Shown here one piece after another: positions 13,508 through 36,473 of a stretch of 64,000 bases of DNA (position 1 is its first letter; the number at the start of each line of letters is the position of its first letter). The notes below the pieces were generated by a model, which was not told the DNA's origin, did not search any database, and worked only from the letters and a program-made list of their open reading frames with translations. The position numbers and the translations under genes were made by a program. This stretch comes from Cyanophora paradoxa CCMP329 (taxonomy: Eukaryota > Plantae > Glaucophyta), in contig QPMI01000056.1 in the NCBI GenBank assembly GCA_004431415.1, positions 434,001 to 498,000 on the forward strand, written 5' to 3'.

Positions 13508-16180
13508 CTATCGCTTGGGCTTTGAGGCTGCCGCCCCTCCGGATCCCGCGCCGGCGCCGGCGCCGTCCGCCCCCCGCACGTCGATGCCCAGCGCCGCCGC
13601 CCGCTGCGCCCCAGTCAACAAGCGAAGGCATCATGGCATCGAATTAAGGCCCGTGCGCGGCGCGCCTTTGCGACGGCGCGGGCGGAGGCCAGGTCGCCCC
13701 TCTGGACGTGCACCGCCGCCAGCGCGCGGAAGGCCTCCGGGCCCCCGAACTGCCCGCATCGATATCGATCGGGCCGGGCGGGCTCGACTAGGCGGATCGG
13801 ACGCGAGCAAGCGGACCTCTGGGTTAGAGGCGACGCCGGCGTTCTCGAGGGCCGGGAGCAACCGCTGCGCCGAACGCGGTGAGCGGCGAGTGGCGGGCCG
13901 GGCCCGGGGAGGGGCGGGGTGGGGCAGGGGGGGACGCGCCTCGAAGGCTGCACGCGCGTCGTCGAGACGCCCAAGGCAGTGGTAGACCCTCCCCAGGCAG
14001 AAGACGAACGGCAGCGACCTGCCCCGCCCGCTCAGCCGCCTGCAAAGCGACGCGGGCGGCGGGCGGCGGAGGGGCGGACTGCGGATGGCCGTCGCCGACA
14101 GAGGCGCAGAGGGCGCGCTCGGCGGCCTCGAGGCAGGCGACGGCGCGCCGGTCGTCGTGCGCCGGCGACGCCGCGTCGGCGTGCAGCGCGCCAAGCTGCC
14201 CCAGCAGCAGCCCCACCGCCGCGCTCTCCCCCGCCCCGTCCCCCAGCGCCCCCAGTAGGCTCTCCAGCGACCCCTGCCGCCCCCTCGGCGCCGCGCCGCC
14301 CCGGGAGGGGGGTACGGCACCTCCAGGGCGGCCACCGCCGCCTTTGGGTCGCCCCGCGCCGCGAGGGCCGTCTGCGCCGCGTCGGGCGGGGGCGGCGAGG
14401 GGTCTTGAATCACAAATACCTGTGCTCCATGCAGCTTGCTTTGACCGATTTCGGCACCTCCAGGGCGGCCACCGCCGCCTTTGGGTCGCCCCGCGCCGCG
14501 AGGGCCGTCTGCGCCGCGTCGGGCGGGGGCGGCGAGGGGTACGGGCGGGCCCGGGGGGTACCGCGAGGGCGCGTGTCGCCTCGACGACCTCCTCGCTGTC
14601 CGGCGTCTTCTGCGCCCGCAAGTCCGCCAGCGCCCGCTGTGGGGATGAGGGTCAGGCAGGCGGGGTACGCGCAGGCCCGGCGGGGTAGGCGGGGCGCGCC
14701 TGGAGAAGGGGTACAGTCTTGTCGTGGTTCCCCAGGTCGCTGTGCGCTTCCGCCAGGCTTCGCAAGGGGGTACTGAGGGGTGCCGGGGGCTGGGGGGTAC
14801 GGGAGCGTACGCCTGGCAGAGCTCGGGGATGGTGGTATCCCTCTCGATGTCCTCGCCACCCTCCGAGGCGATGAACAGCGCCCGCTGCTCCCAACACCGG
14901 TTGGCAACCGGGTTTGTGGGGGGTACGGGCTTCAGCGCACCTCGAGCAGGGGTACGGCCTTGGCCGCGAAGCCGTGCCGCCGGAGCGTGCCCGCGATCAA
15001 GGCGAGGGACCTGCGGGGGTACCGTGAGGAGGCGGGCGGGGCCGCGGGAGAGTACGCGGACATCGCGAGCTCGGCGCGGTCGGACGCGTCGAGATCGGAG
15101 GCGTCCGCCGCTTCGAGGAACATCGTCGCCGCCCGCTGCGGCGGGTCAGGCCCCTGAGGGGTACATGAGGCCGGCCGGGCTCGCCTTGAGCATGCGCTCG
15201 CCTTCGGCGCGGCGGCCGCGCTCGAGGTAGATGTCGCCCAGCTCGTGCAAGCACCAGGGCACCGTCTCGTCGTCCGGCGCGTCCTTCCCGCTCGCCACGC
15301 ACGCTGCCAGGCACGCCTGCGCGCGCTCTGTCGGCCGGAGCACCCGCGGCCTGCGCGGGCGCCGGCGCGCGCCTCGAAGATCGGCTGCGCCTTGTCCAGG
15401 TCCCGCCGCTGCATGTACGCGTCGCCCAGCGCGCTCATCGTCGCCAGCGTCTGCGCGCGCCCCGCCGTCGGCCCCGCGCGCGGCGGCGGGCGGCGGGTAG
15501 CGCACGATCTGGTGGCGGGGCCCAAACTCCCGCGTCGCGACGTCCACCGCGAGCTGCCGGGCGCCGGCGCCGGCGCGTCGGGCGGCGCGCGCGGCGGCGG
15601 GCGGCGCGCGGGGGCGCGGGGCCGGACCTTGAGGCGCGCCTCGGCCTCGGGAGAGGCGTCGTCCTCGAGCAGCTCCCGCGCCTGCGTCGTGAGCCGCACC
15701 ACCTTCTCCATGACCGCCGGGTCCGGCCCCCGCTCCCGCTCCCGCTCCCGGCGCTGCGCCTTGTCCGCGCTGCGCCCTTTGATCTTCTGCACCAGCCGCT
15801 TCCCCGTGTACCACCGTCGCTGCGGGAGGGTGCAAGGCCGCGCCGGGCGCTGAGCGGCCGCCTGGATCGGCGGATGGGCGGCCGAGGCAAGCCGTGCTGC
15901 GCGCTGCGACTGGCTCCGGGCGATCGCTGTGGCTATGCAGTCACGCGTAATCGTCGCCGAACCACAGCTGATCGCGCCCGTTGGCCGGGCAAGGGTAGCG
16001 CTGACGTCGATCGCCGCCCCCCGAAGCGCCGTAGCGGCAGCGCGTCCCCAGACGGCGTGTGACACTATGACACCCTGCGGCGCGTGCGCGTACGCGTTGG
16101 AACGGCCGGCGAACAGCTGCGGGCGGCGTAGTTGGGCACGGGAGCGACGCGGCCCGCACCTGCCTCCGGAGCGCCAGCAT
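13508..16180 (-). CDS. TPR protein T2 with putative mitochondrial presequence, spliced
   Basis: MLALRRQ, intron, then an Arg/Ala-rich leader ending RRWYT. TPR helices TLATMSALGDAYMQRRDLDKAQPIFE, WCLHELGDIYLERGRRAEGERML, CLGRVYHCLGRLDDARAAFE. Ends ASKPKR*. Confidence 0.75.
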
Positions 16181-16264
16181 CGCACGATATCCTAAACCAG
16201 CGTACTACGCGTTGGAATGAGCTGTGTGCGCGCGGCTCAACCTCGCTTTTTTTCGAGAAGAACG

Positions 16265-16276
16265 GGGGTAGAGCTC
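16265..16276 (+). promoter_or_regulatory. Conserved GGGGTAGAGCTC motif upstream of F-box genes (also 1619, 11321, 24455, 28436, 32719; variant at 36691)
   Basis: Same orientation relative to each F-box ATG, ~110-140 bp upstream (~220 bp for copy G), next to an A/T tract. Confidence 0.5.
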
Positions 16277-16396
16277 CATCGAACCGCAGTCCCTACAGCG
16301 CGTCGTGCTGCAGTCGTAGTACGGATCGCGCCAGTGTTTCAGCTTAGACGAGTAATCTGAAGCGGTCAAAGCGGTCGCCGAGCGTGAGCTCTTCGA

Positions 16397-18360
16397 ATGT
16401 CTGAACGAACAGCAAAGCGCGCGCGTGCGGAGGAGGCGTCGGTCCCGGCGAGCTCGTCTAGCAGCACTTCGGCAGCGGCAGCGAAGGCGTGCGCGAGCGG
16501 CGAGGGCGTGAATCATTTCGCGCGGCTGCCGGACGAGCTGGTGCGGCGCATCTTCGGCGAGCTCGAGGCGACGGAGGCGTACGAGACGTGCCAGCTCTGG
16601 TCGTTGGATCGTCGATTCCGGCAGATCATGCGGGGCGTGCACTGGCCGCAGCTGCGGGTCGAGCCCTGTCGGGAGCCGACGGCTGAAGATTCTCTGGCAA
16701 TCTGCACGGCGGAGTACAGGAAGCGCGTGGAGCGAGTCACAGCCCGTGTCCAAAGCGGCGCACTGGCGGGCTGTCGGCGGCTCGTCGTCGGCCCAGCGTT
16801 GGCGGGAGGGCACGCAGCCGTGGGCTCGAAGGAGAGCGTGGAGGCGTGCATCCGTTCGACAGTTGCGATGGCAAGTGAGCCTTCAATCGCGCCCTTCTTG
16901 ACCGGAGGCCGCTCTGACGCTCGCTCTCCGTGCCGTCGTCGCAGAAATGCTGGGGGCCTTGTCGGTCGCGCCCGCGCGGCTTGAAGACGTCTGCTTCTCA
17001 GCCCACTGGATGGGCTGGCCGTGGCCTTCGAGACAGAGTAAGCTGGGCATCGACAAGCCACAAGCCCTGGATGACGTCGTGGGCGCCTTCCTGACGGCGC
17101 TGCGCCCCGCCCCACTGCGAGCGCTGCGGCTGGAAGATTTCTCCATCTTCTGGTCCTTCACTAGAGTTGCAGCCATGGGGTGCCTACCGAACCTCCAGGA
17201 GCTCAGTTTCGAGCAGACCTACCTGACGAACGTTACGAAGGAGACTACGGTTCGCATTCTCTCGCCGCATCCCGCTTCTCTAGAAGCCATCCTCCTGACC
17301 GCCCTGCTGCGATGCAGTCGAAGCTCGTGAAGCTCTGGTCGGGCCTGAAGAAAATCGCGTGCAACGTGAAGGACGGGGAGGCGCTGCGGGTGCTCTCTCA
17401 GCTCCCGCTGGAGGAGCTGCGGGCCACCGCCTACTCGTGCGCCGGCGTGGAAGAGGCGCTGGAGGCCTTCAAGACCGACTCCGTCCGGGCGCTGCACCTG
17501 CCCTCGCACGCCGGCGTGAAGCTCCCGGCCGCCCCGCGCCTCCTCGCCTCGCTCCTTCGCCTCCGTAACCTCGAGGAGCTCTCGATCGCGGTTCGCTTTC
17601 CCACCAGATTCCCTTCTTTCGGCCGCTCTGACCCGGGGCCGTTCTCTCGGCAGGTCGACAACGGCTCCGGCGAGGCCCTCGCGGGCCTCGGCGCCCTCCA
17701 GAAGCTGCGCTCCCTGAGGCTTCTCCTGATGGCTCGCCCCGCTCTTCTTTCTATGTGCACTTCATCCTCTCAACCCTCCCTCAGATTTGCGGGGACGCTC
17801 CCGCAGGCGACGTGGGCCTTCTGCGGGCCGCCGCGGCGGGTCTGGAGGCCCTCCCCCGCCTCGATTCGCTCTACCTGCAGATCGCCGGGCTAGACAGCCA
17901 TGTGGGGGCGCCTCCCGGGCCGGAACCGGGAGACCTCGCCTCCCTGATCCGCGCGGGCCGCCCGAGCCTGCGGGAGCTGAAGGTCTGGGCGCGTACCCCG
18001 GCCTCGACAGAGCTCCTCGGGGTCCGACCCGCCCCTGCGCCGCCGCCCCTTTATCTTCCTTTCTGATCCCGCCCGGGCCCGCAGGAGGTCGCGCGGGCCG
18101 GCCCCAAGCTGGAGGAGGTCCGGCTCTGCCAGAGCGCCGACGGCGTCGACGAGCTGGGCGTCTACAGCGAGCTGCTCGGGATGCCCGCGGCCGACGCGCG
18201 CGCCCCCGGTTTCAACGTGCATGTCGTGCTCTTTATCCCGGAGCCGATTCACAGGCAGGTGCTCGCGATTCTCCGCGGCTACTTGAAGGGTAGGAAGCTT
18301 CCCGTTCGCTTCGATATTCGTACCGAAGCTGAAGCCTTAGAAGTACTCGAGCTCCACTAA
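16397..18360 (+). CDS. F-box/LRR-like family gene, copy C, spliced
   Basis: NHFARLPDELVRRIFGELEATEAYETC; same intron positions as the paralogs; ends EVLELH* (TAA 18358-18360). Confidence 0.85.
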
Positions 18361-18642
18361 TCTAGCTATAGCTATCTGCTGACTGACTTCCGGCTAGCTA
18401 GCTCGAGACGGGGAGGTCACCGTGGTCACATATACATTCAATTTAATACGCGGCTCGGCGCCGCGGCGGGGCGGGGCGAGGGGAGGGGAGTCGGGGTGCG
18501 GGGGCTGGGGCGGGGTGGGCATCCTCGGGGCGGTGCCGCATTAGCCGCTCAGGGGTGCGGGGGAAGGGAGCACAGGGGCGCCTGAAGGTGTCACATTCGG
18601 ATCGCGCCGTAACCCTACGCGGTCCGCCGAGCCCGATACCCT

Positions 18643-18841
18643 GGTAGAGCTCTCCGCCAGCTTTCGAACGACCCCCATATTGCGATGGAAGGGGGGGTAC
18701 ACAAACACGAGTTGGCCGAGGGTCAGCTCCTTCCCTCCGCCCCTGCTCCCTGCGCCGGTCTCAGAACCGGATAGAGCTCTCCGCCAGCTTTCGAATGACC
18801 TCCATATTGCGGGGGCCGGGAGGGGGGTACACGCACCAGTT
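18643..18841 (+). repeat. Diverged ~70-bp direct repeat, two copies, period ~127 bp
   Basis: tagagctctccgccagctttcgaa.gacc.ccatattgcg...ggggggtacac at ~18644 and ~18772. Confidence 0.7.
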
Positions 18842-19639
18842 CCGCCGGGTCCGGTCCCTCGTTCGAAAGGTCCGCGCCGGACGCTGAGAAAGGTTCTGCG
18901 CGTTCACAAGTGAGCTCGCCAGTGCACGAGCCGGCGCTGCACGCACGCGCAGCTACAGTCTACAGCTGCAGCGCTCACGTACGCGGCTGGCAGCACCACC
19001 AATTCTGCGCGGCGATCGCGCGAGCGTTCACGTTCGGTCGGCAGCCGCTGAGAAAAAGATGGGGGATCCTGTCGTCGTGGCCTGGACCGTTGAACCGCGT
19101 TCGGTCGAAGCTACGGGCGGTTCGCAAGGAAGGCAGGCGGTCGAATTCAGCACGTGATATTCACCGCGCGAGGCGCAACGAATCAGCCTACGCGAGCCCT
19201 GCAGCGCGGCGCACAGCCCGATCGAGCCCGCATGCATCTCGAGCTCGCGTCCTGTGCCGCGACGGGGTGTGTTAGGCACTGTTAGCCTAGTAGTAAGCGC
19301 AAGAAATGTTCGGCACGCAAAGCTCACGCGGGCTCGATGTGCGATGCGTGGCGCTTGTGCGATACGGTGTTGGAGTGCTCGGCTTAGCAGCGCTGACCAA
19401 CGCATTGCGTAGGAACACGATAAGCTTTAAGAAAGCTGCGTGTTGGGCCGCATGCTCGTCAATATCGTACCCCAGCCTAGCAGCGCTTTCTTGTTCGGCG
19501 GACAGCTGCACCAGCACGATCGGTCTCATAGCGCTCAGAAGACCGGCAATGCTCGCTATACACAGACAGGTGCCGCCGCGCCGCTTCGAATCCCTACCTC
19601 GCCGCCCTGCGCTCCCTGACCGATACGCGCCCGCCGCGG

Positions 19640-22186
19640 ATGCAGGTCATGTCGCCGACGCTGGGGGGACGCGCTCTCGCGGCGGTACGCGAGGCCGCCT
19701 GCGCGGCGGGCCGTGCACGCGCAGCTCCCCTCGGGAGCCCCGCCTGCAGCCGGGACGTCGCTACGCTGAGCTTTTCGACTTCAAGCGAAGCGCGGATTCG
19801 GTTCCCCCAACGGACGCCAGCAGAGGCCGGGGCGCTCGCCCAGCACAGCGCTCTCCCGCCGCCCAGCCGCGTCTTGGGCGCCGGCGCAGCCATCTCGGGG
19901 CAGCGGCAGGCCCTACGGCCGCTAGATCAGCCGCGTAGGCGATACTCTTCGGCCGGCACCGCGTCGCAGGCGATGGGCGTGAGCGCCGAGGACGGCTGGG
20001 CGGAGTCCGGGGCGGTCGAGGACCTCCTGAAGCGGGCGATGACGACAGCGCAGGCCGGCGACCTCGCTGAGGCGGAGGGACACATGCAGGCGCGCTGGCT
20101 TGCGTCCGGCCGCACGCGCGTGCGCGCCCGCTCACCGCCGCTGCCTCCCGCGCAGGCCGCGCTCGACCTGACGAAGCGGACGCTGGGCGCGAGCCACCGA
20201 AACGTGAGGCCGCCCCGCCGCTTTTCTAAGCCGCGGGCTGCCCTTAGCAAGGTTTCCGTACCCCGGCAGACGCTGGCGATCACGTGCAGCCTCGCGAGTC
20301 TGTGGAGGCGGAAAGGGGACGCGGATCGGGCTCGCGCCCTGTTCGAGGCGCGCCCCGCCCCGCCCGCCCGTCCGCCCCCGCGCCTCTGACCAGAGGAGGG
20401 TACAGAGCGCGGTGGAGGCGTGTGGTACCCCCGGCCCCGGGGACGACCTGGGGGGTCGGGCCGCCCTGGAGATCGCTAGCATTCACCTCTTCGGGAACCG
20501 CCGCGAGGACGCCGAGCGCTCGATCGAGGTACCCCCTCCCTCCCATCCACCCCTCCCCAAATCGCCGACGCCGAGGGGGGGTAGCGTGCCGTGGAGCTCT
20601 TCGGGCGTTCCGCGGGCCCAAGCGACGTCCGGCTCGCCGAGTGCGCCCCTACCCCCCCCCCTACCCCGAAGCTTCGTGTATCCCCCGACGCTCTCCTCAG
20701 GGCCCTGCTCGTCTGCGCACAGATGCTGCGGCACTGCGGCGCCCGGGCAAAAGCGGTACCCCTCGTCGAGGCGAGCCCGCCGGCCGCTCCCGCCGCGCCC
20801 CTCCGACGCGCCCGCGCAGAGGGCTCTGGAGGTGTACACCGTTAGTCGCGGGCCCGTCAGCCCGGAGGCGGCCCGCGCTCTCTCCAGGCGAGCGTACCCC
20901 CTTGGCCCCGCCCCGCGTACCCCCGCCCCTCTCAGTCCGCCGCAGCCTGGGTACCGATCTGGCGGAGCTCGGGGAAACCGAGCGCGCCCTACCCATCCTC
21001 GAGGTGCGCTGGCCTGTACCCCGTCTACCCGCTCCGCTTCGCTGACCTGGGGGTAGAGGGCGCTGGGGACCCACGCGGGGGCGCTGGCGGCGGGCGGCGA
21101 GCAGAGGGACTACAGCGTCACCGTCACCGTCCTCGCCGTGCGCGTACCCCCCTTCTCCTCCCCCGCCCCGTCCCTTACGAGCCGCGGGGGGCGCAGGCGC
21201 TTCACATGAAGCGCGGCGACGCCGAGGCTGCCGCCGGGCTCCTGGAGGTCCGTACCCCCCTCTCTCCCCCCCCCCTCCATATTCGGGATCGAATCCTCCC
21301 GCAGCGGTCCCTGGAGGATATTCGAAAGGCGCTGGGCCCAGCGGCGGAGACGAGCGAGCCCCTGGGGGTACTCGTGGGCCAGCTGGGGGTACTGCGCGCC
21401 AGCGTCGACCCCGCCTCGCCCCTCCACGACCCCGCCAGCGCCCTCGCCTGCCTCGAGGTGCCCTGTAGCCCCCTCCCCGCGGCCCTTGGGCTCCTCTTAC
21501 CCCCCGCCCCGCGCAGGCCGCCGACCGCGCGCTGAGCGCCGCCCGCGGGGCCGAGCACCCGGCGTGCGCCCGTACCCCCCGCGCCCCCTCCCCGTCCTCC
21601 AAACCTGCGCAGGCGGCCGCCGGGCGTCCCGTACCGCTTCACGCTGGCGCGCCTGTACCTCTCCCAGGGCCGCCACGACGACGCCCGCGCCGTCCTCCAG
21701 GTCCGCCCGCCCGCCCGCTCCGCCGCTGCCCCCGCGTCGTTTGATCACGTACCCCCGCAGCGCATGGCGCCCGTGCTCGACCACATGCCCGAGGCCCAAA
21801 AGGGGGTACGTGCGCGCATGCACGCCACGCCTCCGCTCCCTCGCGGGCCCCCGGCGGCGTGCCGAGCCGAGCCGATCTCGGGCTGGGCAGGGGCCGCTGG
21901 CGGGCCTGGCGGGCGGGGCGTTCCGGCTGCTGGCGGCCCTGCACCTCCAGCGCGGCGACGAGGCCGCCGCCGCCTCCGCCCTGATGGTCCGCCCGCCCGC
22001 CCCCAGCCGGCGCCCGCCCGCGGCCCGCCGCTCCCCGCTCCCTTCGGGCCTCACGCGGGGCGCCGCTCCCCTCTCCCTTAAGCTTCGGGCCTGACGCGGG
22101 GCGGCCGCGCGCGGGCGCAGCGCGCGAAGGCGCGGGAGGCGGACCCCGGCCCCGACGCGGGCGCTGGCGCCAGCGGGTCGAATTGA
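19640..22186 (+). CDS. TPR protein T3, divergent paralog with putative mitochondrial presequence, spliced
   Basis: Leader ending RRRYSS; TLAITCSLASLWRRKGDADRARALFE; VLVGQLGVLRASVDPASPLHD; FTLARLYLSQGRHDDARAVLQ. Exon layout similar to T2. Ends ASGSN*. Confidence 0.75.
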
Positions 22187-22307: not shown

Positions 22308-24315
22308 CTAGCTAGCGCTAGCTAATGATGAGGACCGCAACTTCGTATCGTTTATCTGAATGGTGATTGGAAGCTTCCTAGCGCTGAGCCAACCGCGGAA
22401 AACGGCGAGCGCCTGGTCTAGAAGAGGGTCCGGAACTTTCCAGGCTAGATGGACGTGGAAGCCGGGGGGCCGGTCCTCGGGCACGCTGAGCAGCTCGCTG
22501 CAGGGTCCCAGCTGTCCGATGCCAGCGTCAGGAGGACCGCAATACAGGATGTACACTTTCCCCAGCTTGGGGCCGGCCCGCGCGACCTCCTGCGGGGCGG
22601 GCCGTGGCGGGATCAGACAGGGCAGGGTATCGGACAGGGACAGGGCAAGGCGCAGCGGGTCGCCCAGCGGACCTGTAGGACCTCTGCCGAAGCCAGCGTG
22701 TTAGTGATCCGGAGCTCCCGCAGGCACGGACGGCCGGCGCGAATCAGAGACGCGAGGCCGGCGGGGTCCAGCGTCAATCCTTTGACAACCAGGACGAGCG
22801 ACTCGAGGCGGGGAAGGGCCGCCAGCGCCGCCGCGGCCGCCTGCAGCACGCCGGCGCCCCCGGCGGAAGCGGAGAAGAGCTGCGGAACAGCAGTGAGCTT
22901 TTTGAGTCGGCCCAGCGTGTGGGAAGGGCGGCGGCACAGATCGGAAGCTAGCGGGGCTAGAGGGGATGCACGTCGAGGTGGAAAGTGAGGGAGCGGAGCT
23001 TCTGGAGGGCGCCGAGGCCCGCGAGGGCGTCGCCGGAGCTGTGGTCGATCTGCGGGCGAAAGGGTCAGATCAAATAAAATCAGATCAGATCTGAGCGGAG
23101 GGGCGGCACCGACGCGGTGAGCTCCTCGAGGTTGCGGAGGCGGACGATCAAGGCGAGGAGGCGGGGGCTGACGGTGTGCTGGGGCTGCAGCGAGCCAAGG
23201 GGGGCAGGCAGGTGCAGCGCCCGGACGCAGTCGGTCTTGAAGGCCTCGAGGGCCTCTTCCACGCCCGCGCACGATTCGGCAGTGACCCGCAGCTCCTCCA
23301 GCGGGAGCTGAGAGAGCACACGCAGCACGTCCCCGTCGTTCACGTTGCACGCGATCTTCTTCAGGCCCGACCAGAGCTTCACGAGCTTCGACTGCATCGC
23401 AGCAGGGCGGTCAGGAGGACGGCTTCTAGAGAAGCGGGATGCGGCGAGAGAATGCGAACCGTGATCTCTTTCGTAACGTTCGTCGAGTAGGTCTGCTCGA
23501 AACTGAGCTCCTGGAGGTGCGGTAGGCACCCCATGGCTGCAACTCTGATAAAGTGCCAGAAGACGGAGAGGTCTTCCAGCCGCAGCGCTCGCAGTGGGGC
23601 GGGGCGCAGCGCCGTCAGGAAGGCGCTTACAACGTGCTCCAGAGGCTGTGGGTTGTCGATGCCCAGCTCCTTCTGTCTCGCCAGCCGAGGCCAAACCATC
23701 CAGTCGCCTGAGAAGCAGACGTCTTCAAGCGGAGCGGGCGCGACCGACAAGGCCCCCAGCATTTCTGCGACGACGGCACGGAGAGCGAGCGTCAGAGCGG
23801 CCCGAGGTGCGGAACGAAGCTACTTGAAGCTGACCTGACATCGCACGTGCTGAAACGATGCACGCCTCGACGCTCTCCTTCGAGCCCACGTGCACGGCTG
23901 GGTGTCCGCCCGCAAACGGCGGGCCGACGACGAGCCGCCGGCAGCCCGCAAGCGCTCTACTTCGAATGCGCGCAGTAACTCGTTCTAGACGCTGTCTGTA
24001 CGCCTTCAAGCTTGCCAGCTGATCGCCGTCATCGCTGGGCTCAATCCGCAGAAGCTGCCAGTGCACGCCGCGCATCAGCTGCCGGAACCGCCGATCCAGA
24101 GACCAAAGCTGACAGGTCTCGTACGCCTCCGTCGCTTCCAGCTCGCTGAGGATGCGCCGCACCAGCTCGTCCGGCAGCCGCGCGAAATGGTTCACGCCCT
24201 CGCCGCTCGCGCACGCCTCCGCTGCCGCTGCAGATGAGGCGACTGCTATGCTTGAAAAGTTCGCCGGGGTGGAGGGCTCCGCCGTACGCGCGCGCTTCGC
24301 CGCTCGCTTTGCCAT
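22308..24315 (-). CDS. F-box/LRR-like family gene, copy D, spliced
   Basis: MAKRAAKRART...NHFARLPDELVRRILSELEATEAYETC; last exon ARKLPITIQINDTKL. Confidence 0.85.
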
Positions 24316-24505
24316 TTGAAGAGATTGAGCTCAAGCTCAGCGACCTTGCAACCGGCCTCCGCTCAGGGAGAGTCGCGCTGATGGTACGATCCGTTATGCG
24401 GCGCGGCCGCCGCACGCCACTGCTGGGAGCAACGATGGGAGTGACCGCCGGATTGAGCTCTACCCCCCGCCCACACAAAACAAACGTGTGGGCCACGTCG
24501 CTCTC

Positions 24506-26293
24506 ATGCCCGCCTGCGCCGCCGGCCGTCCCAACGCGTATGCTAGCGCTCGTTTAGGACGTCGTGCGATGGGCACGCCCAGCCGCCGAATTGAACAGCC
24601 CAGCGCCCGGCCGGCGCGGCCTTGCGCTCTCGCGCAGCGGCTGTGGTACACGGGGAAGCGGGCGGCGGGTGCAGAAGGTCAAGGAGCGCAGCGCGGGCGA
24701 GGCGCCGGCGCAGCGGCGGGAGCGGGAGCGGGAGCCGGACCCGGCGGTCCTGGAGAAGGTGGTGCGGCTCACGAAGCAGGCGCGGGAGCTGCTCGAGGAC
24801 GACGCCTCTCCCAAGGCCGTGGCGCGCCTTAAGGTCCGGCCCCCAGACCCCGCGCGCCGCCCGCCGCCGCGCGCCCGACGCGCCGGCGCCGGCGCCCGGC
24901 AGCTCGCGGTGGAAGTCGCGACGCGGGAGTTTGGGCCCCGCCACCAGATCGTGCGCAGCGCTGCGCTGCCCGCCGGCGCCGCCGCATGCGCGCGGGGCCG
25001 ACGGCGGGGCGCGGGCAGACGCTGGCGGCGATGAGCGCGCTGGGCGACGCGTACATGCAGCGGCGGGACCTGGACAAGGCGCAGCCGATCTTCGAGGCGC
25101 GCGCCGGCGCCCGCGCGGGCCGCGGGGGCGGCGGCCGAGCGTCCGCGCGCAGGCGTGCCTGGCGGCGTGCGTGGCGAGCGGGAAGGACGCGCCGGACGAC
25201 GAGACGGTGCCCTGGTGCTTGCACGAGCTGGGCGACATCTACCTCGAGCGCGGCCGCCGCGCCGAAGGCGAGCGCATGCTCCAGGCGAGCCCGGCCGGCA
25301 TCCTGTACCCCTTCGGTCCCTCACCCGCCGCAGCGGGCGGCGACAATGTTCCTCGAGGCGGCGGACGCCTCCGCTCTCGACGCGTCCGACCGCACCGAGC
25401 TCGCGATGTCCGCGTACCCCTCCCACGGCCCCGCCCGCCTCCTCAAGGTACCCCCGCAGGTCCCTCGCTTTGATCGCGGGCACGCTCCGGCGGCACGGCT
25501 TCGCGGCCAAGGCCGTACCCCTGCTCGAGGCGCGCCGGAGCCCGTACCCCCCACAGCCCCACAGCCCCGGTTGCCGACCGGTGTTGAGCGCAGCGGGCGC
25601 TGTTCATCGCCTCGGAGGGTGGCGATGACATCGAGAGGGATACCACCGTCCCCGAGCTCTGCCAGGCGTACGATCCCATACCCCCCAGCCCCCGGCGCCC
25701 CTCAGTGCTCCCTTGCGCAGCCTGGCGTAGGCCCACAGCGACCTAGGGAACCACGACAAGACTGTACCCCTTCTCCAGGCGCGCCCCGCCTACCCCGCCC
25801 GGCCTGCTCGTACCCGCCCGCCTGACGGGCGGGCGCAGAAGGCTCCGGAGCGAGGAGGTCGTCGAGGCGACACGCGCCCTCGCGGTACCCCCCGGGCCCG
25901 CCCGTACCCCGCCGCGCCCCCGCCCGACGCGGCGCAGACGGCCCTCGCGGCGCGGGGCGACCCAAAGGCGGCGGTGGCCGCCCTGGAGGTGCCGTACCCC
26001 CCCCACCCCCCCCTTCCCCCCTTCCTCCCCCCCCCTCGGCGTCCCCCCCTCGGGCCGCCGTACCCCCCTCCCGGGTCGGCGCGGCGCCGAGGGGGCGGCA
26101 GGGGTTGCTGGAGGGCGCTTGGGGGTGAGGCGCGGACGAGCCCCTCCGCCGCCCGCCGCCCGCCGCCCGCCCGCTTAGCTGAACCCCGACCGGGGGGGGC
26201 AGGTCGCTGCCGTTAACGTTTTCTGCCTGGGGAGGGCAGCCTTCGAGGCGCGCCCCCCCCCCCCCCCCGCCCCCCCCCCCCCCCTCCCCCCGC
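24506..26293 (+). pseudogene. TPR pseudogene T4
   Basis: Homologous to T2 but with 5' deletions, a 4-nt insertion near 24660, an in-frame TAG at 25728-25730 (Glu codon in T2/T5) and lost 3' exons. Confidence 0.75.
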
Positions 26294-26346: not shown

Positions 26347-28318
26347 TTAAATTGTGTGGCTGTTGACATGAACTTCGATCAAAGAGCGCTTGAACCAGCC
26401 GCGGAACATAGAGAGCGCTTGCCGCTGAAGCACCTTGGGGAGTCTTAAAATGCGCACGTCGAGCCGGCCGTCGGCGTTGGGCATGCTGAGGAGCTCGCTG
26501 AACGCACGGAGCTCAACAAGGCTGGTGACTCGTGCCGCATAATGAGAAAGAACTGTCTCCAGCTTTGGGTTGGTGCGCGCGACCTCCTGCACGTTCACGA
26601 AGTCAGTCAAAAGTGTGCCGCGGCCGCAGCATGCACATGGCAAGTGGCTGACCCGCAGGAGTTCTGCAGAACCCAACTTGCCGCGCAAATAAAGGCGCTT
26701 CAGGGTCGGCCGCGCAACACGGATCAGGGCAGCCAGATTGGAGAAGTCGGGATCGACTCCTGTCACATTGACATCCAGATCTAGCGACTCCAGCCGCGGG
26801 GCGGCCGCCAGCGCCCCCGCTGCAGCCTGCAGAAGGGCAGCGCCCCCGTTTGGGGCACCTGCGATCTGTGCGGCGAGTCAGCGGCTAGCGGCTGGTTCGA
26901 GAAGACAAAAGAGCGCGGCTGCAAGGCGGGGCTCACGACGATGTGGAGTTCAAGGGAGCGCAGCTTCGGGAGGGCGCCCAGGCCTGCGAGGGCATCGACG
27001 CAGCTGTGGTCGACCTGCCCGCAGAAGAATCAGGTCAGGTCGATCTAATCTGATCTGAGATATGAGCGAGCTCGAGGGGAGGGTACCGCCACATAGAGCT
27101 CCTCGAGGTTGCGGAAGCGGAGGATCGAGGCGAGGGCGCGAGGGCTGATTGGCTGTGATGGCTCGCAGCTGCCGGAGAGCGGCAGCCGGAGCGAGCGGAC
27201 GCTGTCGGCGCTGAGCGCCTCGAGCGCCTCCTCCAGCTCGGCGTGCTCCTCCTCGTCCAGGATCTCAACACTCACGCGCAGCTCCTCCAGCGGGAGCCGC
27301 GAGAGCTCCTTGAGCGCCGCTCCGTACCGCACTGACCACGACACACTCTTCAGGTTCGGCCAGATCTCCACCAGTTCGGACTGCGCATGCGGCCGAGGTC
27401 AACTGTCATCCTCATACGGACCCCCAGGTCCCCCGCACAGCACGCGCGCACCGTTTGCTTGGCTGTGGACACAAACGAGCGGGATGCGATAAGCTCCCGG
27501 AGGTGCGGCAAGCAGCCGGGGGCTAGCGCTGCCGCGTCGAGCAAAGCCGTGAAGAGCGCGCCGTCCTCCACCTCGAGCGATCGTAGAGGAGCGGGCTGCA
27601 GGGCTGACAGAAAAGCGCCTGCGACGTGCGCAAGAGACTGCGGCCTGGCGATGCCCAGCTGACGCTGCTTCGCTTCGGAAGGCCACAACCACCAGAGCAT
27701 CGAGACGAACAGGACATCCTCCAGCGGGAAGGACGCCACAGACAGGGCTGCCAGCAGTTCTGTGGCCATGGCGAGATCATGATCAGTCATATGCATGTTA
27801 ACGTTACGGCGGCACGCGGGTATATATATAGATGAAGCCGCACCTGTGATGGCGCAGGCTGCATCGATGCAAGCCATGTAGTGTTCCATCGAATTCCTGC
27901 CCCATAAGGAGCACGCTGCTCCGACAACGAGCCGCCGACAGCCCGCCAGCGCCCCGCTTCGAATACGAGCTGAAAATCGGTCAAGCCGCCGTCTGTATGC
28001 TTTCAAACAATCCTGTTTATCGCTTATATCGTTGTGCTCAACGCGCAGCTCTTTCCAGTGCACGCCGCGCATGAGCTGCCGGAACCGCCGATCCAACGAC
28101 CACAGCTGGCACGTCTCGTACGCCTCCGTCGCCTCCAGCTCGCTGAGGATGCGCCGCACCAGCTCGTCCGGCAGCCGCGCGAAATGGTTCACACCTTCGC
28201 CGCTCCCGCTTGCCTCGAGCTCGGCTGCCTCTGCCGAAGAGAGGCCCGCTGTGCTAGAAGTGCTCGCCGGGGCTGAGGGATCCGCCGTACGCGCGCGCTT
28301 CGCTGCTCGCTTTGCCAT
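26347..28318 (-). CDS. F-box/LRR-like family gene, copy E, spliced
   Basis: F-box motif in ORF 27350-28318; LRR-like exon in ORF 27045-27371; last exon FRGWFKRSLIEVHVNSHTI*. Confidence 0.85.
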
Positions 28319-28464
28319 TTGAAGAGATTGAGGACAAGCTCAGCGACCATGCAACCGGCCTCCGCTCAGGGAGATTTGCGCTGCGACCGCCGCGCACGCC
28401 GCTGCTGGGAGCGACGATGACGCTGCGTGTCGATTGAGCTCTACCCCCGTCCGCACAAAAAACA

Positions 28465-30625
28465 ATGGGCCGCGTCGCTCTCGCAGAGTCTGGGGATGCG
28501 TACGCGCATGACATTGTCACAAGCCGTCTAGGGACGCGCTGCCGCCATGGCGCTCTCGCCGGGCGTCGACCGGCGCCAGCGCGCCCTTCGCCCACCCGAC
28601 GGGCGCGATCGGCAGTGGTTCGGCGATGCTTCTGCGTCACTGCATAGCCACAGCGATCGCCCCGAGCCAGTCGCAGCGCGCAGCGCGGCCCGCCCCAGCC
28701 GCCCACCCGCCGATCCAGGCGGCCGCTCAGCGCGCGGCGAGGCCTTGCGCTCTCCCGCAGCGGCGGTGGTACACGGGGAAGCGGCGGGTGCAGAAGGTCA
28801 AGGAGCGCAGCGCGGGCGAGGCGCAGCGGCGGGAGCGGGAGCGGGAGCCGGACCCGGCGGTACCGGTCATGGAGAAGGTGGTGCGGCTCACGACGCAGGC
28901 GCGGGAGCTGCTCGAGGACGACGCCTCTCCCGAGGCAGAGGCGCGCCTCAAGGTCCGGCCCCGCGGCCCCGCGCGCCGCCCGCCCCGCCCCGCCCGACGC
29001 GCCGGCGCCCGGCAGCTCGCGGTGGACGTCGCGACGCGGGAGTTTGGGCCCCGCCACCAGATCGTGCGCCGCCCGCCGCCCGCCGCCCGCCGCCGCGCGC
29101 GGGGCCGATGGCGGGGCGCGCGCAGACGCTGGCGACGATGAGCGCCCTGGGCGACGCGTACATGCAGCGGCGGGGCCTGGACAAGGCGCAGCCGATCTTC
29201 GAGGCGCGCGCCCGCGCCCGCGCGGGCCGCGGGGGCGGCGGCCGAGCGTCCGCGCGCAGGCGTGCCTGGCGGCGTGCGTGGCGAGCGGGAAGGACGCGCC
29301 GGACGACGAGACGGTGCCCTGGTGCCTGCACGAGCTGGGCGACATCTACCTCGAGCGCGGCCGCCGCGCCGAGGGCGAGCGCATGCTCCAGGCGAGCCCG
29401 GCCGGCATCCTGTACCCCTTCGGTCCCTCATCCGCCGCAGCGGGCGACGACAATGTTCCTCGAGGCGGCGGACGCCTCCGATCTCGAAGCCTCCGACCGC
29501 GCCGAGCTCGCCATGTCCGCGTACCCTCCTGCGGCCCCGCCGCCGCCTCACGGTACCCCCGCAGGTCCCTCGCTTTGATCGCGGGCACGCTCCGGCGGCA
29601 CGGCTTCCGGCCAATGATGTACCCCTGCTCGAGGCGCGTCGGAGCCAGTACTCCCGCAGTGCCGGTTGCTGACGGGACTTGTGTCCAGGTGCGCTTTTCA
29701 TCGCTTCGTCCCCGAGCTCTGCCAGGCGTACGCCACAGTACCCCCCTATAGCTAGCCCCCTGCGCCCCTCAGTACCCCCCTTGCGCAGCCTAGCGGAGGC
29801 CCACAGCGACCTGGGGAACCACGACAAGACTGTACCCCTCCTCCAGGCGCGCCCCGCCGCCCCGCCTCGCCAGGCCTGCTCGTACCCCGCCTGCCTGACC
29901 CTCGTCCCCGCAGCGGGCGCTGGCGGACTTGCGGGCGCAGAAGGCTCCGGATAGCGAGGAGGTCATCGAGACGATACGCGCCCTCGCAGTACCCCTCGGG
30001 CCCGTCCGTACCCCGTCCCGCCCCCGCCCGACGCAGCGCAGACGGCCCTCGCGGCGCGGGGCAAACAAAAGGCGGCGGAGCCGCCCTGGAGGTGACGTAC
30101 CCCTCCCCCTCTTCTCCCGGCGGGGCGCGGCGCCGAGGGGGCGGCAGGGGTCGATGGAGGGCCTGCTGGGGGCGCTGGGGGATGGGGCGGGGGAGAGCGC
30201 GGCGGTGGGGCTGCTGCTGGGGCAGCTGGGCGCGCTGCACGCCGACGCGGCGTCGCCGGCGCACGACGACCGGCGCGCCGTCGCTTGCCTCTAGGCCGCC
30301 GAGCGCGCCCTCGGCGCCTCCTTCGGCGACGGCCATCCCCAGTCCGCCCCTCCGCCGCCCGCCCGGCGGCCACCCGCCGCCCGCGCTGCTTTGCCGGCCC
30401 CGGACGGGCGGGGCAGGTCGCTTCCGGATCCGTTCGTCTTCTGCCTGGGGAGGGTCTACCACTGCCTCGGGCATCATACCTCCCCCTACCCCCGTGCCCG
30501 CCTCCACGTGCACGCCCCCGGCTCCCCCCCCCCCCCCCCCCCCCGCCTCCCCTCCCCCACCGCCTCCCCCACCCCCTCCCCTCCCCCACCGCCTCCGCCC
30601 CTCCCCCTCCCCCCCCTCCCCTCCG
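28465..30625 (+). pseudogene. TPR pseudogene T5
   Basis: TAG at 28529-28531 (Trp TGG in T2) and TAG at 30292-30294 (GAG in paralogs). Start exon and 3' exons are missing; ends in a poly-C tract. Confidence 0.75.
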
Positions 30626-30651
30626 ACCTCGTTTGTTATAATTAATATTCA

Positions 30652-32607
30652 TCACACAATTTTACCGTTGACACGGACACTGATAAAAGGCGCCCGTACA
30701 TGGAACCAGCCCCACAGCATTGAGAGCGCCTGCTGAAGGAGCACCGCGGGAAGGCCATGGATGTCCAGGACAACTTCGAGGCGGCCGTCGTCGGTGGGCA
30801 TGCTGAGGAGCTCGCTGCAGCTGAACGCGTGGAGCTCGAGGAGGCTGGTGACTTCGGCCGCATTGTGAAAGAGAAGTACAGTCTCCAGCTTCGGGCCGAC
30901 GCGCGCGACCTCCTGCGTCCGAGGGAAGCATCAGTCGTGAGTCAGAAGCATCGGGGCGTGGCAAGTGGCTGACCCGGAGGACTTCAGCAGAACTTAAGTT
31001 GCCGCGAAGGTAAAGGCGCTCCAGGGTCGGCCGCGCAACGCGGATCAGGCCAGCCAGACTGGAGACGTCGGGAACGACTCCTCCAGAAATCACATCCAGG
31101 GTCAGTGTCTCGAGCCGCGGGGCGGCCGCGAGCGCCCCCGCCGCAGCCTGCAGAACGGCAGCGCCCCCGTTCGGGGCGTCGACGACCTGCGTATACGTAA
31201 CGAGTCAGTCACTGTTCCGAACAGATGGTATAGAAGACAGGTCGTACGTCAATCTCGAGCGTGGCAGAGCGCAGCTTCTGCCGGTTCGCTGGACCCACGA
31301 GGGCGTCACTGGACGTGTGGTCTATCTGCAGGAGACCGAGTCAGATCAGATCTAAAAGAAGGAGAAGGGGGGATGGAATGCAGCGGGGGTACCACCAAAG
31401 CGAGCTCCTCGAGGTTGCGGAAGCGGAGGATCGAGGCGAGGGCGCGAGGGCTGATCGGCCGCGTGCGCTCGAATGGTTCGTCTGGATCGGAAAGCGGCAG
31501 CTCGAGCAAGCGGACGCAGTCGGCGCTGAGCGCCTCGAGAGCCTCCTCGAGCGCAAGCTCCGAGGGCCCCTCCACAAGGCTCTCCACATTCACGCGCAGC
31601 TCCTCCAGCGGGAGCCGCGAGAGCTCCTTGAGCGCCTCTCCGTTTTGCACCGAGCACGAGATCTTCGCAAGGTTGGGCCAGGTCTCCACCAGCTTCGACT
31701 GCGGCCGCGGTCAATTGCGATGGCGAGCCTCAGCCCCGCGCAACACGCGTAGAGCGAACCGTGTGCTGAGCCGTCGGTGGGGCGAAGCGGCGCATGCTCA
31801 GCTCCCGGAGGTGCGGCAAGCAGCCGGGGGCTGCCGCGTCGAGTAAAGCCAAGGACAGCGCTCTGTCCTCCACCTCGAGCGACCGGAGAGGGGCGGGCTG
31901 TAGGGCTGCCAGGAAAGCGCTTGCGACGTGTCTCAGGGACTGTGGCGCGGCGATGCCCAGCTGACGCTGTTTCACTTCAGCGGGCCAACCATCCCAAGAG
32001 TCTGTCCAATCGACTGAGAAGAAGTGCACACTCTCCAGCGGGGCGGACACCACAGACAAGGCTGCCAGAAGTTCTGTGGCGAGCGATCAGTCGGAGAAGC
32101 ACTGTCACTCAGCGAGCATACCGACGCACTTGTAATCGCGCAGGCCGCATCGATGCAAGCCTCGACGTGTTCTTTTGACGTGCACGTGCCCGAGAACACG
32201 CGCGCTGCTCCAACAGCAAGCCGCCGACAGCCGGCCAGCGCTCCGCTTCGAGCGCGCGCTGAAAAACGATCGAGCCGCCGCCTGAATGTCTCCAAACGTT
32301 TCTGCCTATCGCAGGCGCCCGCTTTGCTGGGCTCGAGCCGCAGCTGCTGCCAGTGAACGCCGGGCACGAGCCGCCGAAACCTCTGATCTAGCGACCACAG
32401 CTGGCATTTCTCGTAAGCCTCCGTCGCCTCCAGTTCGCTGAAGATGCGCTGCACCAGCTCGTCCGGCAGCCGCGCGAAATGGTTCGCTTCCTCACCGCCC
32501 CCGCTCGCGTCTGTTACCGCTGCAGAATAAGGGCCTGCCGTGCTAGACGAGCTCGCCGAGGCCGACGGCTCCTCCGCACGCGCGCGTTTCGCCGCTCGCT
32601 TCGCCAT
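30652..32607 (-). CDS. F-box/LRR-like family gene, copy F, spliced
   Basis: F-box motif in ORF 31972-32607; last exon reads ...LWGWFHVRAPFISVRVNGKIV*. Confidence 0.85.
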
Positions 32608-32820
32608 TCGAAGAGCTCACACTCAGTGTCCGCTTCGACCGCTTCGGATTGCTCTTCTTCTAGGCGTGATCCGTGCTACGACCGCAGCACGACGCGCTGT
32701 AGGGACTGCAGTTCGATGGAGCTCTACCCCCGTTCTTCTCGAAAAAAAGCGATGCTGGGCCGAGCCCACGTACACGCAGCTGATTCAAAAGCGTAGTACG
32801 CTGGTTTCGGATAGCGAGCC

Positions 32821-34320
32821 ATGCTGGCGCTCCGGAGGCAGGTGCGGGCCGCGTCGCTCCCGTGCCCACCTGCGCCGCCCCCATTTCGCCGGCCGTCCCA
32901 ACGCGTACGCACATGCGCCGCAGGGAGTCATAGTGTCACGCGCCGTCTGAGGACGCGCTGCAGCCATGGCGCTCCGGCGGGCGGCGATCGGCGCCAGCGC
33001 GACGCTTGCCCGCGGCCGCCCGACGGGCGCGATCAGCAGTGGTTCGGCGACGAATACGCGTCGTGCATAGCCGCAGCGATCGCCCCGAGCCAGTCGCAGC
33101 GCGCAGCGCGGCCCGCCCCAGCCGCCCATGGCCACCCGTAGATCCGGATCCAGGCGGCCGCTCAGCGCGCGGCGCGGCCTTGCGCCCTCCCGCAGCGGCG
33201 GTGGTACACGTGGAAGCGGCGGGTGCGCAAGGTCAAGGAGCGCAGCGCGGGCAAGGCGCAGCGCCGGGAGCGGGAGCGGGATCGATATCCGGACCGGGAG
33301 CCGGACCCGGCGGTCGTGGAGAAGGTGGTGCGGCTCACGACGCAGGCGCGGGAGCTGCTCGAGGACGACGCCTCTCCCGAGGCCGACGCGCGCCTCAAGG
33401 TCCGGCCCCGCGCCCCCGCGCCCCGCCCGCCGCCGCCCCGCCCGACGCGCCGGCGCCCGGCAGCTCGCGGTAGACGTCGCGACGCGGGAGTTGGGGCCCC
33501 GCCACCAGATCGTGCGCCGCCCGACGCCCGGCGCCGCGCGCGGGGCCAACGGCGGGGCGCGCGCAGACGCTGGCGGCGATGAGCGCCCTGGGCGACGCGT
33601 ACATGCAGCGGCGGGACCTGGACAACCTGGGCGACGCCCCTCAGTCACCCCCCTTGCGCAGCCTTGACCTGGGGAACCACGACAAGACGGTACCCCTCTA
33701 CCCCGCCAGACCTCCTTGTACCCCGCTTGCCTGACCCTCGTCCCCGCAGCGGGCGCGAGCGGACTTGCGGGCCGGGCGCAGAAGCCGCCGGACAGCGAGG
33801 AGGTTATCAAGGCGACACGCGCCCTCGCAGTACCCCTCGGGCCCGTCCGTACCCCGTCCCGCCCCCGTCCGACGCGGCGCAGACGGCCCTCGCGGCGCGG
33901 GGCGACCCAAAGGCGGCGGTGGCGGCCCTGGAGGTGCCGGTCCCCCCCCTCCCGGGGCGGCGCGGCGCCGAGGGGGCGGCAGGGGTCGCTGGAGGGCCTG
34001 CTGGGGGCGTTGGGGGACGGGGCGGGGGAGGGCGCGGCGGTGGGGCTGCTGCTGGGGCAGCTTGGCGCGCTGCACGCCGACGCGGCGTCGCCGGCGCACG
34101 ACGACCTGCGCGCTGTCGCCTGCCTCGAGGCCGCCGAGCGCGCCCTCGGCGCCTCTTTCGGCGACGGCCATCCGCAGTCCGCCCCTCCGCCGCCCGCATT
34201 CAAAGTCTGTTGCCAGCACACCGCCGCCGGCCCTCGACTGGGCAGGGCAGGTCTCTTCTGTTCCTCCTGCCCCCCTCTGCCCTCCTCCGCGCGCCCCGCC
34301 CCGCCCCACCCCGCCCGACA
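32821..34320 (+). pseudogene. TPR pseudogene T6
   Basis: MLALRRQ start retained, but TGA at 32948-32950 (TGG in T2), TAG at 33139-33141, an internal deletion of roughly 600 bp at ~33625 and a 3' truncation. Confidence 0.8.
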
Positions 34321-34445
34321 CTCAATTCCAGCTGCGTGCTGAGTTGTAGGGCGTTTCCACGTGCCTGTTTCATCATATATAGCTATAGGCCGGATTTGAA
34401 TGACAATCAGATGGTGAGGGGGCGGGAGGATGTGCCTCCGCCTGC

Positions 34446-36473
34446 CTACGAGGAAGTGTTGAATACTTCTTCTGAATTAACGTGGGCAAAGATTGGGGGA
34501 GCCATATCTCCGAACCAGTCAGAGAGAAGAGCGAATGCCTGATTGCTGAAAACCGGGTTGGGGGAGACGACTTTGAGATCGATGCGAAGGTTGGGCAGGT
34601 GGTCATTGGAGATATTCCGTAAAGCGCTCAACTCTTGCAGCTTGTCGATGCTGCTGACGTTGACCCCAGACCTATAGTACAAGTCGACAGATTGCAGTTT
34701 CGGGCCGGCCTGCGCGATCTCCTAAACGAGCGACGTGCACGTGTCAGTCCAGAGTTCGAGTTGCATATATATGCATCGCAATCACGAACCTGCAGGACCT
34801 GTGCCTCGAAAATCATTCCACAGTTGATCTTGAGCTCCTTGAGAATCGGACGAGAAGCACTTATAAGGGATGCCAAAATGGCGGGGTTTGCCCGAGGCTC
34901 AATCCGGATGTCGCTGCTCACAGATAAAGCAAATTCGAGCGATGACGGGGCGGTCGGCAGCGCCGCAGCTGTAGCTTGCATTAAACGTGTATTTTTGTCC
35001 TCGTCTCGATCGATCTGGGCGGCGAGTCATGATTAGGATAATTAAGTCACAAACGATCGATAATATTAATGAGTGGATCAAAAAAACATAGCACACGTAA
35101 AGCTGAAGCCCGAGGTAGCGGAGCTTCTCTAAAGACCGAAGGCCACCAAGCATGTCACAGGACGTCGACAGGGATTCAACCTGACGCAAGCCGGTTCAGA
35201 AAAGTCCATCGCAAGCTTGAGGAAACATGTTAGAACAGAAATCTAAAAGCAGCTGACCGCGATCCAGAGCTCCTCGAGATTGCGAAGGCGGAGGATGGCT
35301 GCGAGAATCCTTGGCGTGACTGGCTCCCTGGGCGATAGAAATAGCACTCGAAGATAATTTGCATTGAACGCCGGCGCCTCCAGCACCCCCTCCAGGCCGT
35401 CGTTCGAGGTGACGCGAAGAACTTGCAGGTTCTCCAGTGGGAGCTTCAAGAGGTGTTGGAGTGCCGCTCCATCGTGCACGGAGCACGACAATGTCTTGAG
35501 GCCCGGAGCCATTTGGACGAGCTTCGACTGTGTTCGAATTCAAAAAGAAACGACGGGAATCAGAATTTATAATTGAAACCAGAATCAGAAATTTGAATTC
35601 TTCGAAGCGGAATCGAACCGTGTGCTCGGCCTTCAGGATGAGGGCCCCGTTTTCCAGTCGCAGCTCTCGCAGATTCTCGAAACAACGCGGAGTCGCAACC
35701 GCGACGAGAGTGGAAGAAAAGCGCCAGTCGTCCAGCTGCAGCGACCGGAGCGGGGCGGGGCACAGGGCCGCCAGGAACGAGCGCGCGACGTCCTCCAGGG
35801 ATCGCGGCGCTGCGATGCCGAGCTCGCGTTGCTTCGCCTCCAGCGGCCAGGGTTGCCAGTTTCCTGTTAAGCAGACTGCCTCCAATGGCACAGGTGCCGT
35901 TGACATGGCTTTCATCAGTGCTGCGCAATCGCAAGCGCGGCAAGAATGTTAATCATTTTGAATTTGCAACTGACATTGCAAAGAGCGCATTGCATAATTA
36001 CCTGAAAGAGAATATGTCGCATATATGCAAGCCTCCAGGCCCTCTTTCGTGCTCAAGGCACGATCGATATCCGATCGACCCGCAGTATAAGCACCACGGT
36101 CGACCCACGCTGGACCGACGACGAGCTGCGAGCTGCCCGCCAGCGCCCCGCTTTGGACGCGAGCAGTGAAGCGGTCCAGCTGCGCTCTGTAGTTGTTCGT
36201 CCGCTCTAGCGAATCGATATCATGTTGATCGAATTGATATCGATTCCGGCTGCAAGGGAGCCACAGCTGCTGCCACTGCACGCCGCGCATGAGCTGGCTG
36301 AACCGACGATCCACCGCCCACAGCCGGCACTCCTCGTACGCCTCCGTCGCCTCCAGTTCGCTGAAGATGCGCCGCACGAGCTCGTCGGGCAGCCGCACGA
36401 AATGGTTCACTCCCTCGCGATCGCGATCGCCGCCCCCGCCCGCGTCGACGTCCGAAGCCGCTCTCGCCTGCAT
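34446..36473 (-). CDS. F-box/LRR-like family gene, copy G (most divergent, AT-richer), spliced
   Basis: NHFVRLPDELVRRIFSELEATEAYEEC; ILRLRNLEELWI; last exon ...LSDWFGDMAPPIFAHVNSEEVFNTSS*. Confidence 0.8.

Follow-up and report, generated by a model that had tools for sequence, protein, structure and literature searches.

The window analysed here is a 64,000-nucleotide stretch of DNA from the glaucophyte alga Cyanophora paradoxa CCMP329 (contig QPMI01000056.1, positions 434,001 to 498,000), with a G+C content of about 70%. It carries an array in which predicted F-box/leucine-rich repeat (LRR) genes lie among copies of a gene for a tetratricopeptide repeat (TPR) protein. Seven distinct F-box/LRR genes (X2, B, C, D, E, F and G) and two duplication-derived copies (X1 and A) are present, and four of the genes (C, D, E and F) are positioned head-to-head with a TPR copy of the TPR_12 type (Table 1). 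The F-box copies have kept open frames while diverging from one another, and the TPR copies beside D, E and F are broken and yet much less diverged, which suggests that the two halves of the repeated unit do not share one history.

Copy order and coordinates were established by mapping EukProt proteins and their exon peptides back onto the window DNA. Proteins of the window match the EukProt models tig00000215_g18639 to g18653 (EP00741 Cyanophora paradoxa). A preliminary description of this DNA, made from its letters, had reported four divergent gene pairs (T2/C, D/T4, E/T5 and F/T6) in units of about 3.7-4.3 kb, and F-box copies B and G that lack a TPR partner. Self-blastn and exon mapping confirm the four pairs. 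The repeated unit, recovered by a repeat finder (families D1-D5) and by self-blastn, has start-to-start distances of 3.8-4.3 kb and includes one inverted copy. Searches by tblastn detected no TPR remnant upstream of B or G, nor upstream of X2, which is likewise partnerless. The genes of the array contain many short introns, some with GC donors. GC-AG introns occur in the database models at 17732 (intron 4 of C), 29392 (T5) and 25285 (T4), with the donors GCTCGC and GCGAGC, and such donors may be common in the C. paradoxa genome. Pfam searches with the raw open reading frames (ORFs) of the window gave no matches to the array genes, owing to the spurious ORFs that the high G+C content creates and to the numerous short introns that interrupt the real genes.

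Table 1. Genes, gene fragments and divergent spacers of the array. Positions are those of the window; g and P numbers are EukProt identifiers.
Feature	Position	Strand	Description	Basis
X1	1-1180	+	partial F-box/LRR copy, cut at the window edge; 99.7% duplicate of X2	self-blastn, exon mapping
A (g18639, P0002)	1752-3526	+	F-box/LRR gene; 99.7% duplicate of B	self-blastn, EukProt model
T1	4661-3805	-	TPR 3' fragment (exons 11/12-17), identical to the 3' part of T2	exon mapping
X2	9143-10957	+	F-box/LRR copy; six exons, all open; no in-frame ATG seen in exon 1	exon mapping
B (g18644, P0001)	11454-13423	+	intact F-box/LRR gene, 537 amino acids; tail-to-tail with T2, no TPR upstream	
T2 (g18645, P0014)	16180-13511	-	sole full-length copy of this TPR_12 gene, 533 amino acids; 17 exons	
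Spacer T2/C	16181-16396		type I; 216 bp between ATGs; 86% identical to the F/T6 spacer	
C (g18646, P0003)	16397-18357	+	intact F-box/LRR gene, 548 amino acids; six exons; intron 4 with GC donor at 17732	
T3 (g18647, P0022)	about 19549-22186	+	intact diverged TPR paralogue, 493 amino acids; 41% identity to T2; downstream of C	
D (g18648, P0004)	24315-22311	-	intact F-box/LRR gene; nearest is C (dS 0.41)	
Spacer D/T4	24316-24505		190 bp	
T4 (g18649, P0016)	24506-26004	+	predicted TPR pseudogene	exon mapping
E (g18650, P0012)	28318-26350	-	intact F-box/LRR gene; nearest is F (dS 0.47)	
Spacer E/T5	28319-28560		about 213 bp	
T5 (g18651, P0015)	28557-30475	+	predicted TPR pseudogene	exon mapping
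F	32607-30655	-	intact F-box/LRR gene; ATG then MAKRAAKRA..., every exon open	
Spacer F/T6	32608-32820		about 213 bp	
T6 (g18653, P0017)	32821-34210	+	predicted TPR pseudogene	exon mapping
G	36473-34449	-	most diverged F-box/LRR copy; exons open, exon 4 weakly detectable; no TPR remnant upstream	

Members of the first family share an invariant N-terminal motif, NHFxRLPDELVxRIFxELEAxEAYE...DRRF, which was compared among 12 paralogues. The Pfam F-box-like family PF12937 matches 9 of the 12 at E<=0.1 (best 2e-4) and PF00646 matches five, all below the gathering score; the top PF12937 score in one scan was 19 bits against a cut-off of 24.3. A profile of the family matches the F-box region of FBXO2 (E=0.02). 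An AlphaFold2 model of C, built from the paralogue alignment with a mean predicted local distance difference test (pLDDT) score of 81.7 (only 41-68 in the F-box helices themselves), places short helices at residues 40-78 ahead of an alternating strand-helix LRR solenoid. The top Foldseek matches of this model in the PDB are COI1-ASK1, D3-ASK1, TIR1-ASK1, MAX2 and FBXL2-SKP1 (E 1e-9 to 1e-6), such that the modelled C protein combines an F-box helical bundle with a substrate-binding solenoid resembling those of solved FBXL receptors. We accept the family as a divergent F-box/LRR family, whose members are probably substrate receptors of Skp1-Cullin-F-box (SCF) ubiquitin ligases. The receptor matches, the sub-threshold F-box-like scores and the TPR_12 matches given below agree with the gene identities first proposed for the two families.

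Each F-box copy appears, from its sequence, to be a working gene under relaxed purifying selection, because the exons are open and the ratio of non-synonymous to synonymous divergence (omega, dN/dS) lies between 0.36 and 0.75. As the preliminary description had suggested, the copies keep their frames: no homologous exon of any copy contains an in-frame stop, and the last exons end at homologous stop codons. In G, exon 4 is detected only weakly, and X2 may use an upstream exon in place of a start in exon 1. Divergence was estimated pairwise by the Nei-Gojobori method, exon by exon and then pooled, for the seven distinct genes. Values of dS are 0.41 for C-D, 0.47 for E-F and 0.55-1.24 for the remaining pairs, and the omega range given above holds for all 21. 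The description had also placed most of the divergence in the C-terminal half. Indeed dN peaks in the last two exons (0.22-0.75 C-terminally, compared with 0.16-0.43 in exon 1); however, dS rises there too, and omega differs little between the parts.

Some of the corresponding database models are imperfect. The EukProt model of D (P0004) ends early, whereas the frame remains open through 22311-22455 to a stop homologous with that of the other copies, and the model of E (P0012) splices out an open, homologous part of exon 1 (27848-28085); both need correcting. No EukProt models of F, G or X2 were among the database search matches.

The second family, of the TPR_12/TPR_10 type, is recognized by PF13424 (TPR_12), with scores of 88 bits for T2, 112 bits for T3 and 142 bits for tig00020563_g11320 against a cut-off of 30.1. 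T2 has an arginine-rich, acid-poor, presequence-like N-terminus, and from this composition the protein may be targeted to mitochondria or another organelle. A HMMER scan of 1.84 billion representative sequences found no relatives collinear with T2 other than the Cyanophora proteins g18647 (T3) and g11320, and 13 further matches checked by name are multi-TPR proteins of a generic kind that come from a sea anemone, a bacterium and metagenomes. We therefore reject T2 as a conserved mitochondrial housekeeping gene, and T2 and T3 are not the conserved housekeeping orthologues that had been named as evidence against a functional module at this locus.

Only T2 and T3 are intact, and T3 stands head-to-head with no F-box gene. 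Exon mapping bears out the stops and deletions that had been noticed in T4, T5 and T6, and in addition shows that the 3' exons are gone from all three. T4 has a 4-bp insertion in exon 2 and a stop in exon 9 (25722-25778), and has lost half of exon 10 and exons 13-17. In T5 the ATG, most of exon 8 and exons 15-17 are gone, and exon 13 (30148-30345) contains a stop. Exon 2 of T6 is disrupted by stops or a frameshift, and exons 5-8 and 14-17 are missing from this copy. Introns are retained in all three, and exons are about as similar between copies as introns are. A hand count over a 500-bp alignment gave about 10 non-synonymous to 4 synonymous changes in former exons, an omega near 1. Judged by these features, T4, T5 and T6 are non-processed (duplicative) pseudogenes, and g18649, g18651 and g18653 should be flagged as such in annotation.

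An alignment of the four units (T2|C, D|T4, E|T5 and F|T6) gives 63-78% identity for the exons of the F-box half and 47-66% for its introns, and the intron divergence (K) of 0.45 for C-D, 0.69 for E-F and about 0.9 for cross-group pairs agrees with dS. In the TPR half, identity is 82-97% in every pair wherever the sequences are homologous, with K of 0.09-0.2 (pairs undistorted by the truncation of T4) and exons equal to introns. The TPR half is thus 3-8 times less diverged than the F-box genes that adjoin it. Had the TPR copies arisen in the same duplications as the F-box genes and decayed afterwards, their divergence should be at least that of the F-box introns; since it is 3-8 times lower, the halves differ in history. 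Strong positive selection was considered as the cause of the greater F-box divergence and rejected, because the F-box introns and synonymous sites have diverged to the same degree and omega stays below 1.

The internal structure of the TPR alignment points in the same direction, with no grouping of the copies that holds throughout. Between successive 200-column windows of the alignment, the nearest relative of T2 shifts from T5 to T4/T6, then to T4 and then to T6, and all three possible 2:2 site patterns are present within 500 bp. Moreover, the spacers group as (C,F)(D,E), in conflict with the (C,D)(E,F) grouping of the F-box genes. The segment formed by the TPR copy and spacer therefore appears either to have been overwritten by gene conversion or to have been copied late. 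The earlier notion of one-sided decay is correct as a description of the present copies, but shared duplication followed by decay does not agree with the low TPR divergence. Comparison of the F-box and TPR trees, which had been proposed as a check, reveals incongruent histories.

A shared spacer of about 150-220 bp had been described for all four pairs. The spacers measure about 190-216 bp and belong to two types, T2/C with F/T6 (86% identical) and D/T4 with E/T5, and only a short core is common to all. Outside this core, identity between the types is 51-70%. The core reads GATGGAGCTCTACCCCC in the T2/C spacer, where it is followed by an A-run, and the same elements are found in the other three, the common form being GAT(G/T)GAGCTCTACCCCC and then the A-run. 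No such core is evident upstream of G. The core with its A-run is a candidate bidirectional promoter element.

Beyond the array, the F-box/LRR family has eight further detected members in this genome: tig00001041_g6577, tig00000215_g18574, tig00021434_g21300, tig00000042_g15612, tig00000042_g15645, tig00021038_g17529, tig00000605_g2472 and tig00000430_g652. Of these, g18574 is on the same contig as the array but far away, and the other seven are on other contigs. Judged by gene numbers in the predicted proteome alone, none of the eight has a T2-like protein beside it. The sole T2-like protein outside the window, g11320, lies on a contig without a detected F-box paralogue. Hence the linkage between the families, for which a search elsewhere in the genome had been suggested, was not found at these eight paralogues by gene-number adjacency.

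The array also contains a near-identical duplication. Positions 1-4743 and 9701-14453 are 99.75% identical over 4,754 aligned bases (self-blastn), at an offset of 9.7 kb. X1, A and T1 constitute the left copy, and the right copy holds F-box genes of the X and B types together with the 3' part of the TPR gene. The duplication probably extends leftward past the start of the window, and it could have arisen in tandem very recently or could be an artefact of the assembly. At its right edge, a 17-amino-acid exon of T2 is itself duplicated (TALAARGDPKAAVAALE occurs twice, at 14508-14458 and 14371-14321), with about 48 bp of AT-richer filler (14404-14451) between the two exons; T5 and T6 run through this point without a break. 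A duplication edge inside T2, together with the filler, further indicates that the locus is still recombining.

We favour, with a probability of roughly 0.7, an explanation in which a species-specific F-box/LRR tandem cluster has carried along, and homogenized, a truncated piece of a divergently oriented neighbouring gene. The cluster would have grown by local duplication and inversion, in the birth-and-death pattern that is typical of F-box families. An ancestor of C would have been located head-to-head with a TPR_12 gene, and the spacer and the 5' two-thirds of that gene would have come to lie also upstream of D, E and F, as dead copies truncated at their 3' ends. These TPR segments would then have been overwritten repeatedly through gene conversion between TPR and spacer sequences, whose G+C content is very high. 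Alternatively, they might have arrived later through one-sided copying during repair that used the conserved F-box exon 1 and the spacer as anchors, and such anchoring in exon 1 would account for the common start and variable 3' ends of the TPR copies. Under this explanation, the F-box genes and the TPR gene would have no functional coupling. The simpler of the two proposals first made for the locus, in which the TPR gene is a passenger carried with the promoter, fits these data better than the module that had been preferred.

Several points weigh against this explanation. Gene conversion is deduced from windowed identities and a few informative sites, and the 99.75% duplication might be an assembly artefact. 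The gene-number test is blind to unannotated TPR fragments near the outside paralogues. TPR remnants persist beside three F-box genes, where their similarity could reflect selection on promoter, enhancer or transcript DNA. Finally, T2 and C may be functionally coupled.

The TPR and spacer segment might instead be kept as regulatory DNA for the F-box genes, serving as a bidirectional promoter, an enhancer or a source of divergent transcripts. It would then be selected or homogenized as DNA in spite of having lost the capacity to encode a protein. The core motif and A-run in all four spacers would suit such a role, as would the 82-97% identity that the TPR segments maintain despite being pseudogenes. 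The database still calls genes on T4-T6 (g18649, g18651 and g18653), which may reflect transcript support. However, B, X2 and G manage without a TPR segment, large and differing deletions are tolerated in T4-T6, and the spacers outside the core have diverged to the 51-70% between types noted above. In addition, conservation spans 1.5 kb and is uniform over former exons and introns, which resembles recent copying rather than constraint on an element. We consider this possibility unlikely.

A second alternative is the one that the preliminary description preferred, namely a toxin-antidote or target/degrader module of two linked genes in which the target decays. In its most specific form, it would be a 'presuppression' module of the kss/fars-3 kind, with T2/C as the single surviving pair, in which the F-box protein binds the product of the divergent TPR gene and delivers it for degradation. 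The module would have been duplicated, and older units would have lost the toxin or target while the F-box antidote survived. T2 and C are both intact and divergent, 216 bp apart and probably with a shared promoter; the family is fast-evolving and species-specific, as are the nematode KSL F-box proteins; and neither T2 nor T3 is a conserved housekeeping gene. In Caenorhabditis tropicalis, toxin-antidote elements are known to have arisen in this way, repeatedly, when an F-box gene was duplicated along with its linked target fars-3 (PMC12680543).

The evidence from the array nonetheless gives this alternative no support. The F-box and TPR halves are discordant in age and in their trees, so the pair was not copied and kept as a single module. 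Each element should contain an intact toxin and an intact antidote, but two intact genes are found in T2/C only, and the 3' exons are missing from each of the three dead TPR copies. D, E, F and G have remained under purifying selection over dS of 0.4-1.2 without a live partner, and so their function should be independent of the neighbour. B, X2 and G, as well as the eight paralogues detected elsewhere, are partnerless. The presequence-like N-terminus of T2 implies that the mature protein may reside in an organelle, beyond the reach of SCF ligases. Furthermore, a drive-type toxin-antidote element needs a sexual cycle, and none is known in glaucophytes. A toxin-antidote or presuppression function for the T2/C pair is therefore very unlikely in our estimation. 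We give equally little credence to the related idea that, if T2/C were a live presuppression module, the recurrent copying of TPR and spacer sequence beside F-box members would represent repeated attempts at T2/C-like modules.

The least probable alternative is an assembly artefact, in which collapsed or duplicated haplotypes or mis-assembly created mainly the 99.75% duplicate and perhaps the TPR segments. In its favour are the near-identity of the duplicate and the right edge, which falls within T2 next to the odd repeated exon and its filler. However, indels, truncation points and flanks are particular to each of T4, T5 and T6, and each copy has a clearly different F-box gene beside it, a pattern that mis-assembly does not create. 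The contig name 'tig' suggests a long-read assembly.

The array can be compared with several known systems. It resembles the tandem F-box clusters of plants and nematodes in combining an N-terminal F-box-like motif with a C-terminal LRR solenoid (COI1, D3, TIR1 and FBXL2 are the closest structurally), and in being species-specific, tandemly arranged and subject to fast protein change that is greatest C-terminally. It differs from them in that its F-box motif is too divergent for Pfam thresholds, its host is a glaucophyte alga, copies of a truncated neighbouring gene are included, and overall omega is below 1. In the S-locus F-box (SLF)/S-RNase systems of Solanaceae and Rosaceae, clusters of several diverged F-box paralogues likewise adjoin a gene whose product might be detoxified by them. 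The Cyanophora partner, in contrast, is a TPR protein without sign of cytotoxicity, and the locus offers no evidence for haplotype polymorphism or a mating system. A parallel with SLF/S-RNase clusters was also drawn for the nematode elements (PMC12680543).

Among those elements, the fars-3-derived kss/klmt system of C. tropicalis is also built from a fast-evolving F-box gene tightly linked to another gene, with both present in several local copies. There, the duplicated target is intact and has turned into a toxin, binding and SCF-dependent degradation were demonstrated, and the organism is sexual (PMC12680543). In Cyanophora, however, three of the four partner copies are truncated pseudogenes and the two halves are discordant. 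The array also resembles cases of concerted evolution by gene conversion, such as gene/pseudogene pairs in tandem arrays, in the uniformly high TPR identity whatever the age of the unit, the mosaic of nearest neighbours and the three site patterns within 500 bp. The departure from the usual form is that only one half of the unit is homogenized here, with each copy keeping its own deletions.

Other features of the window lie outside these units. An ORF encoding WD40 repeats of the CDC20/Fizzy type (7703-8665, minus strand; Pfam E=3e-30) is located between both copies of the 99.75% duplication. Downstream of the array, an ORF at 39841-40869 (plus strand) belongs to the 3-beta-hydroxysteroid dehydrogenase/NAD-dependent epimerase family (Pfam E=3e-27), and there is a weak WD40 match on the opposite strand at 38866-39762. 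Long tandem arrays occupy 48369-52485, 54190-54684 and 55193-56184, with periods of about 360, 168 and 158 bp and 92-97% identity. They are flanked by inverted repeats of about 580 bp that are 90% identical (47014-47594 and 57597-57060), an arrangement that corresponds to an element with long terminal inverted repeats.

If the explanation that we favour is right, glaucophytes join plants and nematodes in having F-box/LRR receptor families that expand in tandem and change rapidly, and the locus provides a clean case in which one half of a repeated unit is homogenized while the other half diverges. Wider importance would follow only if T2 and C interact, which would place an F-box/target module outside animals and plants. 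Were T2/C a live module of this kind, F-box-based toxin-antidote or guard systems would exist far outside those two groups.

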